A stretch of 64,000 bases of DNA, taken from NCBI RefSeq assembly GCF_001194135.2, contig NC_068985.1, positions 106,473,516 to 106,537,515 on the forward strand, read 5' to 3'. The stretch's first letter is position 1. Every line of letters starts with the position of its first letter. The translations under genes were made by a program, and so were the position numbers. The DNA is from Octopus bimaculoides. Its lineage: Eukaryota. This document shows, one piece after another, positions 7,357-54,234 of the stretch. The notes under the pieces were generated by a model. That model saw only the letters and a program-made list of their open reading frames with translations. It made no database searches and was not told the DNA's origin.

Positions 7357-7412
<56 letters not shown>

Positions 7413-17299: not shown

Positions 17300-17640
17300 A
17301 CCACTGTCAGTGAGATGATGTACATGCAGCACTATATTGGGGTAACACAGGGTTCTTTTAAGATTAGATTGAATAACCACAGATCCTCTTTCAGGACTCA
17401 GGAAAACATAATGTCATGACTTGAGCTCGTTTTACACACTTTTTAAAAAGAGAACACAATGACACATAACATTATTTAAAGATTACTAGAAAGATCTAGG
17501 TTGTATGTCAATAGCAATAGGAGATGCAGGCTATTTGGTGGGGAAGAAGATCACTTATCATTCTAAAAATCTCACATGATTTTTTGAACTCAAAAGGCAA
17601 AATTTTGGGTGTGTACTTGCATCCTCTAAAATTTTGGCGG
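17300..17640 (+). mobile_element. Penelope-like element GIY-YIG endonuclease C-terminal fragment
   Basis: HYIGVTQGSFKIRLNNHRSSFR (YIG plus the FKxRxNNHxSSFR helix), followed by degenerate YVNSNRRCRL..EE and LNSK..I motifs. Confidence 0.75.
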
Positions 17641-46633: not shown

Positions 46634-48189
46634 TGTATGTTTATTATATATGTGTGTGTATATTTTATTCACACACAGATAAAACAGAATGCTAAGGGAC
46701 CAGTGGAGATCTTTGTCAAAAAGTCTTGTATTTTCTGGAAAAAGAGACAGGAGGTACAGTGAAATTTCCCCTAGGGAGTAGAATACCCAATATTTCAAAC
46801 TTTCCTTCTGAGTAAAGTAGAAACTTATTTAGAAGAAAGACAGTATAGTTTTACACCCTCTGTAAAACAGTACATTAGACTTCTCTTAGTGACAACGATC
46901 ACATCATCAGGGGCAATTAATGTAATGTGGTGCATGTTATATAATGGACTGATCAGTTTTATATTTGCTAACATTATCATCTTTTGAACTCCAAATACAT
47001 TCAGATATTGAACTTGTGATTTGGCTGAATGTATGCATATGCTGTTATAACTTTTTTTAAAGGAATTTTCAGTAAGCTCTGTTTACACATGTCCTCTGCT
47101 ACCCTATCATCTATCACACTCACCGAAATGTAATTATTATTATAAATAAAATATATATTTCAACTATACTTGTTTTCGATTTATTTCTATTATAGTAGAA
47201 TTGTTACCATATTGGATGAAATGTCTACAGCTATTTCTTCTGACTCTTTATGTTCTGAGTTAAAATTCCATTGAGGTCAACTTTACCTTTCATCCTTTTG
47301 GGATCAATAAAATAAATACCAGTTGAGCAAAAAGGTCAATGTGATTGACTAACCCACTCCCACTAAAAAATTACTAGCCTCATGCCAAAATTTGACACAA
47401 TATTTCTATTATGGAACACTTGGTGGTTTGAGTAAGACATCAGGCAGACAACCATTATCATATTTAACCTTACTGTATGTATATTTGTTCAGCCTGTATC
47501 TTACACAAACACTATCAATATTAATAACTTGTAAGGACACTGTATTTTGTTATGCAACCATACTATACTATAATTTCTACAGAAAATCTGTAGAGATAAC
47601 CTTAACTGAAAAAAAAGGAACCCCCCCCCCATCGATCATGAATGACCAGAAAGTTCTCCACTGAGGCAAAAGTCCAGGCAAGGTTGTTTATGGAAGACCA
47701 TCAGTTGCCCATGTATACCAGTCTCCCCTCTCTATGCCAATGATGTTATCCAGAGGAAGGGAAAAGGCCAATACAGCTTGGCACCAGTGATGTCGGGCTA
47801 GAAATCAAACTCACTACCTCATGATTGTGAGCCTGACACTCTAACCACTGTGCCATGCATCTTCACAACTTTAACAACTATTAATATTATGAATAACAAC
47901 GTTGTGGGTAATATGATGTTGTAAGATAATTCAGGTACATACAGTTTCTGCTCAGGGCATCTTCATGCTCAAACTTTAAATCCAGTGATATGCTAATTGC
48001 CTAAGAGAAAGTGGGCTATAAGCAATTTGTAAATTAAGCTGATACATGTATAATAGAATAAAAGGACAGACAACTGTAGGGGACAATTGGCAAACCTTGT
48101 TCCTTTGTCCCTTTCAGCTTTTTAATGTTTTACCTGTGATGACCTGTTTCTGCCTCCCAAATTATATATCCACACAACAGACTTACCTT

Positions 48190-48520
48190 TTGGCTATTTC
48201 TGAAGTATACCAGTGTATATTGCAACCATTATGAACATCCCTTAGAGGAACTTTCACTGATCTCTTATGATTTATACTCTTTTGTACATTTATTTCTTTT
48301 TATGAGTCAAATAAATATATATAAATATCATAATCTGCCTTGATACCATTGCTATTGTAATTTACAAAATTATATAGAATCATTTGTGTCACAGAACTCC
48401 AAGAAATTTGATCTTTTTCCATTCCCTGTACCATGACCATATCCTTTAGGTACACTAAAGTAGCCATTGTAATGTCGCCTATCTTGTGTATTAAAATTAT
48501 CAGCCATGATAAGGTCACTG
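48190..48520 (-). mobile_element. Old RTE APE endonuclease remnant
   Basis: Minus translation DRRHYNGYFSVPKGYGHGTGNGKRSNFLEFCDTND resembles the RTE motif HGGYGFGTRNEEGERILEFCDAND. Confidence 0.6.
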
Positions 48521-48529
48521 ACACTTGAT

Positions 48530-48754
48530 TTAATCCTTTAGCATTTAAACTGGCCATATCCGGCCAATATATTCTACCTGTTTTATGTTCAAACTGGCCA
48601 GATCTGGTTTCTCACATTAAACCTACAATATTATTCTAAGAATTAAGTTACTTCATCGAAATCTCAAAGCTACAAGATAATGCATGATTAATTCAAAACA
48701 ATGTGAATAAATAAGCATAACTTCTGAGAGAATAATGTGAATGTTAAAGGTAGT
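48530..48754. mobile_element. piggyBac-like MITE
   Basis: TTAA-TCCTTTAGCATT ... AATGTTAAAGG; degenerate TIRs, same family as 3996. Confidence 0.6.
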
Positions 48755-48840
48755 TTATACAAGAAGACCTCATAAAAGCTGTCATTTGTAAGTCCTGACT
48801 TTGGTAGATAGGCAGACATCACTACTGCTATTGTATTGCC

Positions 48841-48965
48841 TAAATAATAGCATACAATCATACATACATCTATATGTACATAAATAATAGCATACAATCA
48901 TACATACATCTATATGTACATAAATAATAGCATACAATCATACATACATCTATATGTACATAAAT
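48841..48965. repeat. Minisatellite, 3 perfect 40-bp units
   Basis: TAAATAATAGCATACAATCATACATACATCTATATGTACA x3 plus TAAAT. Confidence 0.95.
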
Positions 48966-49194
48966 GTAAACACAAATACATACTTACATACATACTGATA
49001 TTCATATGTTTGTACATATACACATATGCACATAAAAATAAAAAAAATACTTGTGTACAAACATCCATTCATATATATATATTGTATTTATAACTATGCA
49101 GTTAATGAGTAAATCTCAATGAAAGCAGCTTGTTTCTGAGTTAGGAACTGGATTCTTCTCTATTGATGTAAAATTTGGCAAATAAATTCTGAAG

Positions 49195-49214
<20 letters not shown>

Positions 49215-49238
<24 letters not shown>

Positions 49239-51905
49239 GAGGTGCTGAAAAATACCCAGGTTGAAATGCCATAAGTTCGTTTTCCTTTTTCAAAGTAAAC
49301 ACCATGAAGATATACAAGAAACTCTAAGAGGTCCTTAATCTTCTCCGATAAGACTAAGAACTTATACATGATGGACACACACAATAGGCTTTTAAATGAT
49401 TCAATCACACAAAAATACGGACGCACTTCCCGACACGCTTATAATAACATTAACTGTGAAGCTAAACAGAAAGCAATTAGGCTAGATGTAGCAGACAGAG
49501 TAAAGATCTTGGTCAAGATAAATGCCTTTATCACTTTAAAGGACTACAAGCTTAATTTTGCCTCTAACCCCAAATGTCACCTGATCAACCCAAGATTGGC
49601 CAGTTGAGTGTGTATAACTGATGAAGATTAATGACGACATAAGGAGGCACACGAGCCTCCCTCTATGGCACAGCACCAATGAGGTGACCTCAAGGTTTAT
49701 TGCTAACCGGAGGAGAGGCAGGGCTAGGCTTACACAGTTTGACATTGTCAACTTTTATCCATTGATTTCAAAAGAGTTGCTGATGAAGGCACTTTCCTTT
49801 GCTAAGGGCTTCACAGATATTAGTGATAGTAATATTAGTGTTATCATCCATGCCAGGAAGACGGTGCTGTTCAACAAAGATTTGATGTGGGTCAAGTAAT
49901 CTGACCCCAAGGGCTCCTTCGATGTGGCTATGGGAGCATATGACAGTGTCGATGTCTGTGATCTTATCAGACTACACATCTCGGACATCTTAGGGAAGAG
50001 GTTTCCTTTGGTCCTTTTCAGTCTCTACAGAGATGACGCCCTAGCCATCTGTAGAGGAGCCAACAGGCACACAATATCTAAACTTAGAAAGGACCTAATT
50101 AGTGCCCTAGGCTCAATGGGACTCAAGATCACCATTGAGACTAATCTCACAGTAGATTTCCTTGATGTTACTTTAGATCTCGGCTCTGGTACATACAGGC
50201 CCTATCACAAGCTAAATGAGAAGCTGTCCTTTATTAGCACAGCCTCCTGCTACCCCACTATAGTTTTCAAGAACCTAGTGAAGGGTGTAAGCAAGAGGAT
50301 CTTGAATCTATCCTCTAGCCAAGACACCTTTGACACTGCTGCCCCCTACTACAATGAGGCACTTGCATCAAGTGGGTTTAAGGACTGCATCTCCTACATG
50401 CCAGGCCCTAGCACCCAAAAAAGGAAGAGCCACAGAAACATCGTTTGGTTTACTTCACCCTTCTCGCTCAATGTCAAGACTGGTGTGGGAAGGATTTTCC
50501 TTAGATTAATAGATAAACATTTCACATGCATACATAGATACAGGTAATTATTTAACAGGCACAACCTAAGAATCTCCTTTAGCTGTGCTCCTAAAATAAA
50601 AAGCATATTAACAAGCATCCACAATACAAGGGAGAAGGCAGGTTGCTCTTACAGGGTATACAATAACTGTCCAGTAGGAAGCCGATGCAAGACTGAAGGA
50701 GTTATCTATGAAGCTACAGTGACACCTAGACCTGCTATCCGCATTACCAGCAATGTACCATCCAACAGCAATAATAGCAGATTAACCAGGTCTCACACCA
50801 GTACAATCGCCACAGCTAGAGAAGATGACCAGTCCAGGACCAGCGCCAGAAGAGGTAACTGATGACCCCAGTACCACCACCACAGATGATGAACAAACCA
50901 TTATCATTGACACCAATAGAGTGATCAGCCCCACATCATACCTTACCACCAGTACAATTGCCACACCTAGAGATGATGACCAATCCAGGACCAGTGACGC
51001 AGAAGGGGTATCCAGCATCCCCAGTATCACCACCACAGACAATGATCAAATAATTATCATCGACACCAATGGAATGACAAGCCCTGCACCATATGTTACC
51101 AACACTCACACTAATGCCAGCAGCTACATAGCCAACCATATGACCAGAAATGATATCCATGGCGATAACACCACTGGATCATTGCGCCATATTGACAATG
51201 TCAGCAACGGTGTTGCCAACAGCATCCCCAGGCTCTGAGTCTAACAGAGATATACCAGGAGTGCGAATAGAGCCACATCACAAGTTTGTAAATATATCGG
51301 ATCGGCCAGTACATCTTTCAAACATCACTTCCACAACCACTAGTCATCCTTCTGAGTCTCAGAAAGACGTTTTGTCATGTCCCTGGCCAGCCATGCGTGG
51401 TGCCTCAAAGATCAAGGGTCTCCATGTGACATCAGGTGGAAAAATAATAGAACATCCAGGCCCATATATTAATAGGAGTGGCCATTGCAAAATCTGCATC
51501 ATGGAGAGATCCAAAATTCTTGAGGAGTATGCTAAACCTGGTGCATTAAATAGTCGTAAAGAAGTTTTCTCAAAATGTATCCATTTCAAGCGCTACCTAC
51601 TGGAAAATTGGATCTCCCTGTTTGCTGGTTAGGCTATTTTGGGTCTATAAGGGTTGTTTTATCCTCTGGTCCAGGTGAGATAACCCTTCCTCATTAATGT
51701 TTTTATACGTTAGCCATTAAATCACGATATCTGAGCGTTTCCTCATGTCTGTGTGGTAGAAAGTTTAATTTTTTTGTCTTTGTATAGAACCTGACAAGCT
51801 GTCCAAAGGGCTGTGATATGAATCCTTTGGGCCAGAATTTAACATTTTATTTTAATAATTTAATCTTTAGAGCGTGCTTCTTTTCTGATATGTGTTTTAT
51901 TGACT
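49215..51905 (+). mobile_element. Penelope-like retroelement (Naiad-like architecture: RT plus C-terminal GIY-YIG), 5'-truncated and pseudogenised
   Basis: RT motifs: DKTKNLY, AFITLKDYKLNF..NPKCHLINP, FDIVNFYP, FDVAMGAYD, LYRDDAL, VDFLDVTLDL, RNIVWFTSPFSLNVKT. EN motifs: CSYRVYNNCPVGSRCKTEGVIYEATVT (50644-50724), KYIGSASTSFKHHFHNH*SSF* (51290-), SLASHAWCLKDQG..IRWKII, GHCKIC..E, LNSRKEVFSKCIH. Flanked by (TA)n; hammerhead remnant in the 3' pLTR. Confidence 0.92.
50797..51100 (+). repeat. Two diverged ~150-bp tandem units inside the PLE endonuclease
   Basis: Unit 1 (~50797-50947) and unit 2 (~50948-51100) both encode TSTIAT.R.DDQSRTS...P..TTTD..Q.IIIDTN. Confidence 0.9.
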
Positions 51906-53234
51906 ATATATATATACATATAAATCTAATATAATAAATGCGAAAACTAATTTCTGTGTCTGTGTGTCACACTTTGAGACCCCTTCTTTCACTATTCATT
52001 GACACTCCTACTATTGCTCATGTTGGGGTGAAAGTAATAGTAGGCATAAAGACAGTAGTAGATTGATGGTTGTGATGGTAATGGAGTGATATTAACAGTA
52101 TGAGCTGTAGTTGTGATAGAGGTGGAGGTGACAGTGATGATGGTAGTGGTGGTGATAGCTGAAGCAGTCAGGGACAATGGTGATAGTAAGCGATGTGAAA
52201 GACAGTGGTGATGGTGGTGGAGGGGAAGGTGGCGAAGTCAAAGGTATTGAGGTGGTGGCATCAGAAATCTGAATGGTGGGTGTATGGCTGTTGTGGTGGC
52301 AATGGTGGTGGTACTGGTGATAGTGATGGTCGAAAACAATCAAAATAAAGAGAGAGAGAGAGAGATAAAGAAAGAGGTTAGACAGAAAAAGAAATTATAT
52401 TGACCCCTGAATGGGAAGACAAAAAATGTTTATCATGCAGCTTTGCAATAAGTTCCAAGTCGACAAATTATATCATTGCTTGGATTAAAATTGTTCATAG
52501 CTTGAAAAATATTGGTCAAGTTTAATAAAATCGAATATGTACTCAATGCATGAAGTGTCATTGTTAGGCCCAAGACCCATTGATGAGCCCTTCACAGAAG
52601 CTGGTTTAAGAGCCGCCTAATAGGTCGGCTTTTAAGCTAGTGTATATGTGTGTGTGCGTATTTGTCGCTTACCACCGCTTGGCAAGCAGTGTTGGCTTTG
52701 TTTACGTCTGTGTAATTTAGAAGTTCAGCATGCGAGACTGGAGGGATAAGCACAAGGGTTTAAAAAAAATAAGTACTTGGGTTAATTCGTTTGAGTTTCC
52801 TTCAAGGCGGCACCCTAGCAGTCCAATGACTAAAACAAGTAAAAGATAAAAATAACAATAACGCAAATTTTCTTAAAATTTAACTGAAGGGAAGTAATTA
52901 CTAAATAGCATTGCGAGAGTTATCGAACTTGAAAGCCTATGGTCGCGATCAAAAAAGACAAAAGTATGAGATTTAAAGTTTTAGAAAATTTCCACTTGGT
53001 CAGTAATTACTTTCACAACGATATTAATGTTCCAGAATACTATATCACTTATTTTTTATAATTTATATATGTTTCACCTTATATAAAATTCAACTTATAT
53101 AAAATTCGTTATTACCTTTCATCCTTTCGGGATCGATAAAAGAAGTATCAAATCAGGACTATGAATTGATGACATTGTAAGCGAATAAGACCAGATAACT
53201 TGTGAAATTTGTCATGACTCTTTGCATTTGGCAG

Positions 53235-53352
53235 CTATGTCTGCAACGACACTGGCACCAGGTTGTATTGGCCCAAATCGACGGACATTCCGTTGGATAT
53301 CGTCGTTGCGAATGAAGAAAGGCTTGAATGCCTGTGCAAATGTCAGTTTTAA
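53235..53352 (+). CDS. Candidate terminal coding exon, Cys-containing C-terminus
   Basis: Acceptor CTCTTTGCATTTGGCAG| (AG 53233-53234). Phase-2 frame YVCNDTGTRLYWPKSTDIPLDIVVANEERLECLCKCQF* in non-repetitive sequence. No homology recognised; could be chance. Confidence 0.25.
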
Positions 53353-53384
53353 TTTCAGAATACCTCTGGCTTGCGCATGCGTAC

Positions 53385-53460
53385 ATGTGTAGATTACTGG
53401 TCGTTTTCAACTAACCGTGGGCCATTTGCGACCCGGGGGACTTTCTAAAGGATACACCTA
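53385..53460. promoter_or_regulatory. Candidate regulatory element in a CpG-retaining patch
   Basis: NRF1-like TGCGCATGCG at ~53392-53401, within 52.5-53.65 kb where CpGs are visibly retained. Confidence 0.3.
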
Positions 53461-54234
53461 CGAAATATTTCTTTGAATTCTCTTAGTAGTGTGACCTATC
53501 TGATAATGAGTTATGTCTCATGCGGTCTACTTCTCGAAAAAGGTTGTCCATGCCTCTTTTAAACTGACACAGCCATCTTCAACGACCATCAAGTTAGAAG
53601 AGGCTAGTATGGGCCGTTGAATATTGCAGGTTCTTTTAGTCTTCTGAGAACTATATGGTTGGTGTCCAGCCTAAAAACTTGAAGGAAAACAAGCAGAATT
53701 TTGACGTAAACTCTCTTGGGATAGATGGGAATTTTTAAAGTGGAATTCAGCTTTTTACAAACGATAAATATGCCTGTTGTTGATGACATGCGTAAAGCAG
53801 ATGTAATTTAGTATAAATTACATCTGCTTTGACATGGGAATATCTTTCCTTTTTTTTTTTGAATTTAGAAAATGTGAAATGTTATATGGGCATGCATGCA
53901 CATGCTTGTGTGCAGGTGCACGCACACACATATACGTACATACATGCATCCATCCAACCATGTATGTATGTATGTATAATTTATATATATTTCAGCATGT
54001 GGTGACCATCTAAGTGAGACGTTTGTTCTTTTCTCTCCATTTTTTTCTTTCTTCATCTATCCGTTCCATAGAAGAGCATATGCCCAAAATATTAAAGGCA
54101 CCTTCCAATTTTCCTGAGTATCAATCTAATATACTTTGTTTGTTTATTTGCCTTGTTTTTGAGTTTTTTATTTTTACACACACACACACACATGCCTATA
54201 TATGTTTACATGTGTGTGTAAATGGTCAGCAGAG

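Follow-up and report, generated by a model that had tools for sequence, protein, structure and literature searches.

Craig et al. (2021; PMC8557442) describe a Hydra clade among the Penelope-like elements, made up of short elements whose single open reading frame (ORF) encodes a reverse transcriptase (RT) with a GIY-YIG nuclease C-terminal to it. In these elements DKT stands in place of DKG, the linker carries a CxCx5C motif, there is no CCHH finger between GIY and YIG, CxxC and CxH motifs surround the catalytic Glu and Asn, and insertion is into (TA)n. A decayed element that is assigned to this clade by its homologues and motifs lies in a 64,000-nucleotide stretch of Octopus bimaculoides DNA (NCBI RefSeq assembly GCF_001194135.2, contig NC_068985.1, positions 106,473,516 to 106,537,515 of the forward strand; the whole stretch is hereafter called the window), and the two halves of its nuclease are separated by a long hydrophilic insert. 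GIY-YIG nucleases are small proteins, and their first two strands, which bear the catalytic tyrosines, are normally joined by a short turn. The favoured reading, which is considered probable, is that this hairpin loop expanded while the family was active and that it stayed translated in frame, probably as a disordered segment.

The RT piece of the window element retrieved 419 protein homologues at 35-59% identity (E down to 1e-78), many of them 450-530 residues long, and these include a Hydra vulgaris protein (P0028) with 42% identity over 91% of the query. The DKG to DKT replacement is seen in the window as SDKTKNLYMM and in relatives as PADKT. The linker motif, which is invariant in 36 aligned relatives, reads CTCRLYNNC in another copy of the family (L003) and is degenerate in the window (CSYRVYNNC), with Tyr for the second Cys. 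Both the CxxC and the CxH motifs flanking the catalytic Glu and Asn were found in the window copy, which is flanked on both sides by (TA)n; a further copy, L001, ends instead in a (TC)n-type repeat. An N-terminal RWK motif is seen in relatives P0005 and P0007, in a region that lies outside the truncated window copy. Between the two Tyr of the window nuclease there is one Cys in ~195 residues and no Cys pair, and among 50 relatives most have no Cys between GIY and YIG and none (0/50) has a pair. Because there is no Cys pair for the CCHH motif, the element was not assigned to Penelope/Poseidon, Neptune, Nematis or Naiad. The identification of a Penelope element in the initial annotation of this DNA is upheld, and the Naiad, Neptune or Poseidon placement raised there gives way to the Hydra clade on RT homologues and motifs. 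The order of RT and nuclease in a single ORF, DKT, the linker type, the lack of a CCHH finger, CxxC/CxH, (TA)n insertion, 5' truncation, head-to-head partial copies and an RT 35-59% identical to members are all shared with the clade (PMC8557442). The C-terminal part of the relatives follows the pattern CxCx5-8CPLxGxC...(V/I)(V/I)Y...YIGxT..FKxR..NH..SF...ELSK..WxLK...IxWxI...CxLCxxEK...LNKRxE...CRH.

In the window the Tyr codon of GVIY is at 50707 (position modulo 3 = 1) and that of YIG at 51293 (modulo 3 = 2). They are 586 nt, or 195.3 codons, apart and out of frame with one another, in agreement with the coordinates and the ~196 codons given at the outset. A profile of 36 related nuclease domains matches the window three times in three frames, at 50644-50826 (E 2e-5), 51266-51463 (E 1.5e-10) and 51441-51611 (E 1e-10), and the split nuclease is therefore real and no chance motif match. 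The catalytic and motif residues Tyr (GVIY), Tyr (YIG), His (HNH), Glu (CKICIME) and Asn (LNSR) are present. The coding pieces lie on the plus strand in the order N-terminal remnant, RT, linker with GIY, insert, YIG half and C-terminus (three-frame translation of 49200-51750). The features are as follows, with frames given as position modulo 3.

49198 to 49235, no strand: (AT)19 microsatellite, the 5' flank or target repeat (Tandem Repeats Finder); the element begins directly after it.
49237 to 51904, plus strand: body of the decayed, 5'-truncated element assigned to the Hydra clade of Penelope-like elements, on RT homologues, the alignment of copy L002 to 49322-51061 and a 3' end as in L001.
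49296 to 49604, plus strand: remnant of the N-terminal conserved region, with DKT at 49347-49355; frame 0.
49633 to 50547, plus strand: RT core and thumb, with YRDD at 50026-50037; frame 1, with stops TAA 49897 and TAA 50545.
50551 to 50718, plus strand: linker, in which the CxCx5C motif is degenerate (50644-50670), and GVIY, the first strand of the nuclease (50698-50709).
50719 to 51280, plus strand: T/S/D/N-rich insert of ~187 codons, in the position of the hairpin loop that joins GIY to YIG; its boundaries cannot be fixed exactly.
50797 to 50947, plus strand: repeat unit 1, 151 nt, in which a 2-nt deletion after 50845 shifts frame 1 to frame 2.
50948 to 51100, plus strand: repeat unit 2, 153 nt or 51 codons.
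51293 to 51632, plus strand: rest of the nuclease, with YIG at 51293-51301, FKHH at 51317-51328 and the ORF stop at 51630-51632.
51633 to 51904, plus strand: 3' untranslated tail.
51905 to 51933, no strand: imperfect (TA)n, the 3' flank.

The element is 5'-truncated at 49237, so that at least 100 N-terminal codons are missing, and the N-terminal remnant loses its frame near 49590, where 10 nt that L002 retains are deleted. The RT motifs FDIVNFYPLI and LYRDDAL can be read in the translation. The linker plus CPVGSRCKTEGVIYEATV share the RT frame (1), the insert is mostly in frame 2 and is followed in that same frame by SQVCKYIGSASTSFKHHFHNH*SSF*, and DIRWK / IIEHPGPYINRSGHCKICIMERSKI...LNSRKEVFSKCIHFKRYLL are in frame 0. 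The motifs of the second nuclease half are IRW (51431-51439), CKIC..E (51486-51506), LNSR (51546-51557) and CIH (51576-51584). At its 3' end (...GTTTTATTGAC, 51904) the window element coincides with L001, and beyond this point the flanks diverge.

The insert is 61% T+S+N+D+P+R and contains a tandem repeat at 50796-51084 with a period of 153 bp (1.9 copies, 82% matches; Tandem Repeats Finder). The two units are 79% identical over 158 nt by BLAST self-comparison and share 33/50 residues as protein. A search for further degenerate units in the head (50700-50796) and the tail (51101-51295) of the insert gave nothing significant. A G/T-rich cryptic-simple stretch (GGT/GAT/GTG-type) at 52000-52340 is, as its reverse complement, ACC/ATC-rich like the insert and has no BLAST similarity to it.

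The frameshifts proposed at the outset are confirmed. After 50845 unit 1 reads CCAGCG--CCAGAAGAGG where unit 2 reads CCAGTGACGCAGAAGGGG, and the two bases by which unit 1 is shorter are retained in unit 1 of L003 (CCAGCAACACAGAG), which reads from GIY into the insert in frame; this bears out the proposal that a 2-nt deletion in unit 1 had broken the frame. The single inserted A that had been placed at ~51441 is likewise confirmed, in that the A-run at 51440-51444 is one base longer in the window than in L001, where DIR*EIMIHPGPY is read in one frame. Four stops lie across the split region, TGA 51236, TAA 51242, TAG 51341 and TGA 51353, the last two within the second nuclease half. The remaining stops had been put down to single C-to-T changes from Arg or Gln. 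L001 has Arg (AGG) at 51236 and Tyr (TAT) at 51242, and the window TAA may therefore derive from Tyr and not from Gln; TAG 51341 is absent from the initial annotation.

The insert is present in four other copies at other loci (L001, L002, L003 and L006), that is, in 4/4 of the copies covering the region, at 70-82% identity. These copies lie on the contigs behind a few translated fragments returned by searches with the insert, every one of them from public read assemblies in a single run series (SRR11869384, SRR11869385 and SRR11869391). Among 1.84 billion representative proteins the insert matches nothing except copies of this family: a protein search with insert plus nuclease returned P0121 only, and a four-copy profile returned P0121 and P0122 only. 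An exact look-up of the window's 137-residue ORF gave no record. Within the window BLAST found no other copy of the family, only microsatellite matches, and a family-profile scan of JGI metagenome contigs gave no relative.

L001 is ~70% identical to the window; in it an inverted 3' fragment (30-381) abuts, head to head, a copy beginning within the insert. It has both repeat units, each nearer its window counterpart than the other unit, and the 153-bp duplication therefore predates the split of the copies. From unit 2 onwards the insert, the YIG region and the C-terminus of L001 are in one frame with three TGA stops. The predicted protein P0121 (L001 453-1217) reads these three stops as Trp and is for this reason taken as the product of faulty gene calling on a decayed copy, not as an intact ORF. 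L002, 79-82% identical, spans window positions 49322-51061 and so contains the RT, the linker, GIY and both units. L003, 72-80% identical, has an inverted 3' fragment (235-296) beside a copy that starts in the linker, and its reading from GIY into the insert is, in one frame, CTCRLYNNCPKGG*CEVEGIIYEAWVTPKTAICIISNVPTN...RDDDQLRTSNTEKINNDPS...RDEDQSRTSDTEEG. L006 is 73% identical in the RT. Its insert, which follows GIICEAVV, has diverged further, though the pieces ...EDEQTDTNSTSEITAPTPYIT... and ...HGNTTGTG... can still be recognised, and it appears to be single-unit. The head-to-head inverted fragments of L001 and L003 are an arrangement typical of Penelope-like insertions. Since truncation points and flanks differ, the copies represent separate insertions, and the presence of the insert in all four others means that the family carried it as it spread. 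Each junction is read in frame in an independent copy, the 5' junction in L003 and the 3' junction in L001. These findings, together with the coding signatures described below, sustain the idea of one ancestral ORF with a large, tandemly duplicated loop inside the nuclease, the disorder of that loop being probable; the insert is neither confined to a single copy nor placed at random frames.

Coding tests were made on the insert in the predicted frame, with the 2-nt gap in unit 1 bridged. There are 2 in-frame stops in 191 codons, as compared with 8 and 22 in the other frames, and shuffled sequences gave a mean of 8.6, with two or fewer in 6/1000. Three-base periodicity is strong (chi2 = 60, p = 4e-11 without unit 2) and is significant in head and tail separately, and the codon phase is that of the RT, with a purine-rich first and a pyrimidine-rich third position; no such periodicity was seen in the 3' tail or in the upstream non-coding DNA. 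The larger indels between copies within the insert measure 39, 15, 9, 6, 7+59 = 66 and 153 nt and are all multiples of three, the 9 nt being three Ile codons missing from L006.

The ratio dN/dS was calculated by the Nei-Gojobori method in the predicted frame and compared with 1000 neutral simulations on the same sequences. Values were 0.35 for window versus L002 (neutral mean 0.74; 17/1000 simulations at or below the observed value), 0.53 for window versus L003 (0.84; 151/1000), 0.42 for window versus L001 (0.74; 11/1000) and 0.45 for unit 1 versus unit 2 (0.80; 150/1000), and in every comparison the predicted frame gave the lowest dN/dS of the three. The ratios in the insert (0.35-0.53) lie below 1, the check proposed initially, and below the neutral means of 0.74-0.84, but the lowest value falls in a pair expected to be neutral, as discussed below. 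The dN/dS signal is modest, and the stops, the periodicity and the indels are the more robust evidence.

The position of the insert in the fold was examined on an AlphaFold2 model, built with 35 homologues, of the nuclease domain in P0081, the nearest relative that is intact (RT 52% identical). The model (pLDDT 92, pTM 0.84) has strands at residues 18-28 (SAIVYEAEVKP) and 40-49 (KKYIGMTAGS) with an 11-residue, lower-confidence loop between them. Its top match in the Protein Data Bank is T4 EndoII (probability 0.84, TM 0.42-0.47, E 0.18), with Hpy188I lower in the list; T4 EndoII was its top profile hit as well (E 0.56). Pfam GIY-YIG (PF01541) matches 6/36 of the relatives' nuclease domains (best E 8e-5), and the window's own pieces gave no significant Pfam family. 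On this model, the insert of the window element replaces the hairpin turn joining the first two nuclease strands.

In 50 related nucleases the spacing from Tyr to Tyr is 11-20 residues, the sole exception being 62 in P0035. The initial annotation had put the usual spacing at ~10-15 residues; the short spacing stands, and the range is adjusted accordingly. Against the 11-20 residues of the Hydra clade, the window family has a loop of ~190 residues with a 51-codon tandem duplication, and the passage of Craig et al. (2021; PMC8557442) on this clade mentions no loop expansion. P0035 (L004, metagenome contig ERZ27289266), whose RT is 37% identical, resembles the window family in carrying an in-frame, T/N/P-rich loop of 62 residues at the same place, and differs from it in that this loop is three times shorter, has no detectable similarity to the window insert and lacks a tandem duplication; it would probably be an independent expansion. 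Sequence comparison suggests that the loop is a recurrent site of low-complexity expansion in the Hydra clade, with the window family the extreme among the relatives compared. Two further 5'-truncated Hydra-clade nuclease fragments, belonging to other families, lie in the window at 17303-17640 (plus strand; profile E 2e-10) and 47053-46859 (minus strand; profile E 7e-5), and are uninformative on loop length because both begin near the YIG strand.

In the favoured reading, the loop between the first two strands of the nuclease would have grown to ~190 hydrophilic, low-complexity residues, with the 51-codon tandem duplication as part of that growth. The insert would have belonged to the masters that were transcribed and transposed, and would have been read in frame with the remainder of the protein. 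That its frame stayed open is most simply explained by the catalytic Arg, His, Glu and Asn being encoded downstream of it, and the fold could tolerate a floppy loop because the ends of the insert meet at the hairpin turn. In this picture the nuclease with the insert was presumably active, the loop was presumably disordered and any function of its own would be at most weak and at the level of composition. The window copy itself belongs to a later, defective subfamily, marked by a stop ahead of the nuclease and by the 2-nt deletion, and presumably copied in trans.

A number of observations weigh against this reading. No intact copy was found, all five copies (5/5) being decayed. The window and L002 have two defects in common, TAA 50545 ahead of the nuclease and the loss of 2 nt in unit 1 (at ~1480 and ~1790 in L002), and the window copy is therefore derived from an already defective master or subfamily, in which ordinary reading could not have yielded the nuclease; L003 is without the 2-nt deletion, and its coverage excludes the site of TAA 50545. 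This defective master, coding for the RT only, thus gave rise to two or more copies that differ in their 5' ends, presumably with proteins supplied in trans. The catalytic Arg of FKxR, kept in more than 90% of relatives, is His in the window (FKHH), a change that is probably decay. The dN/dS of the nuclease core between window and L001 is ~1.0. As both descend from the defective master, divergence between the window and L002 inserts is expected to be neutral, and yet this pair shows the lowest dN/dS (0.35), which weakens the dN/dS argument and is a warning on the power of the test rather than a sign of anything exotic. Slippage in triplet-like sequence can yield indels in multiples of three without selection. 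The most conserved-looking motif of the insert, QTIIIDTN, is absent from L003 and L006. The structural matches to GIY-YIG enzymes are statistically non-significant. Finally, the insert modelled alone (exact window ORF and two relatives) gave a pLDDT of 37, and a low value from a three-sequence alignment is weak evidence of disorder.

The decay of every copy, the nuclease core dN/dS of ~1, the loss of the catalytic Arg and the stop and frameshift common to the window and L002, by which defective masters did propagate, would all be accounted for if the insert had arisen in, or been carried only by, a non-autonomous lineage with a dead nuclease, as a neutral passenger copied in trans that was never part of a working protein. 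This explanation is nevertheless unlikely. It does not predict few stops in one frame only, a strong codon periodicity in the RT phase, larger indels in multiples of three or a dN/dS below that of neutral simulations; L003, without the 2-nt deletion, reads through the 5' junction; and most of the conserved nuclease residues further downstream (Y, H, W, CxxC-E, N and CxH) are still recognisable in the window copy. The coding signals in these sequences point to a period in which the insert was part of translated masters, though for part of the family's history a passenger state may apply, the window's own subfamily being an example.

Less probable still is that the insert is a retained or optionally spliced spliceosomal intron. 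One in-frame GT..AG pair, from GT 50719 to AG 51247 (529 nt; ACA/GTGACA ... TCTAACAG/AG), would give an in-frame loop of normal length, 19 residues (GVIYEATRYTRSANRATSQVCKYIG), the stops at 51236 and 51242 both lie inside this candidate, and Penelope-like elements are documented to retain introns (PMC8557442). L003, L006 and L001 all retain this GT and AG, but as GT and CAG also form part of plain Val and Gln codons their conservation is uninformative either way. The sites are weak, the donor matching 4/6 positions with no clear pyrimidine tract, and an open frame, codon periodicity and multiple-of-three indels are unexpected for an intron. That an unrelated repeat or transposon inserted secondarily, into the window copy alone, can be dismissed as scarcely credible, since four further copies at different loci have homologous sequence in that position, BLAST finds no other match to the insert within the window and the search of representative proteins only family copies, and nothing was found in its favour beyond a low-complexity region with a tandem repeat.

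A stronger form of the favoured reading, in which the insert is a selected, fast-evolving disordered module in the catalytic hairpin of a transposition-competent nuclease, possibly an acidic, Ser/Thr-rich regulatory or tethering loop, is regarded as doubtful; were it correct, the tip of the GIY-YIG hairpin would be permissive for domain-sized insertions. The stretch DDEQTIIIDTN, which is repeated twice, resembles a hydrophobic interaction motif with acidic flanks. A SUMO-interaction-like reading of QTIIIDTN is kept as speculation only, given that L003 and L006 are without the motif.

Some further features of the window can be noted. A search for the hammerhead ribozyme gave no match in 47000-54000 at E up to 1, none in 51560-51960 at E up to 10 and none in L001-L003, copies which are truncated and decayed and lack the 5' region. 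Just upstream of the element, at 48841-48965, there is a perfect 40-bp tandem repeat (3.1 copies, 100% identity) within A/T-rich, CATA-type simple sequence. Weak Rfam matches to microRNAs (mir-297 and others) at 48833-49084 and 53884-53977 score far below the gathering cut-offs, coincide with simple repeats of CA/TA type and are likely to be spurious. The window as a whole has 2205 N bases, is ~63% A+T and contains many long (AT)n microsatellites, for example near 7370, 9242, 9988, 19158, 20329, 40041 and 62808, which are potential targets for a (TA)n-seeking type of element.

Beyond the Hydra clade, Penelope/Poseidon, Neptune, Nematis and Naiad (cd10442) likewise have a GIY-YIG nuclease fused to a telomerase-like RT, and there too the GIY-YIG hairpin hosts a lineage-specific feature, namely two Cys of the CCHH finger. 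In those clades the finger is accompanied by short spacing, whereas the window family has no Cys pair and a long hydrophilic insert. GIY-YIG cores enlarged by insertions or extensions are also found in Eco29kI, Hpy188I and T4 endonuclease II (Dunin-Horkawicz et al., 2006; PMC1564403), and those of the restriction enzymes are structured and thought to build a DNA-binding surface (PMC1564403). In contrast to these enzymes, the window insert is low in complexity, variable in length and without a confident structure, and the matches to them are non-significant.

Overall, the element is an unusual variant of a known one and opens no new class, and every copy seen is dead; over several transposition rounds the family retained an insert of roughly 190 residues in the turn. 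Should the nuclease have been active in this form, annotation based on homology will split or overlook such nucleases, their halves being ~580 nt apart. The tip of the hairpin would then tolerate domain-sized insertions, which would be useful for engineering nickases of this fold, and the Hydra clade, having lost the zinc finger that other Penelope-like elements have there, would evolve freely at this site.

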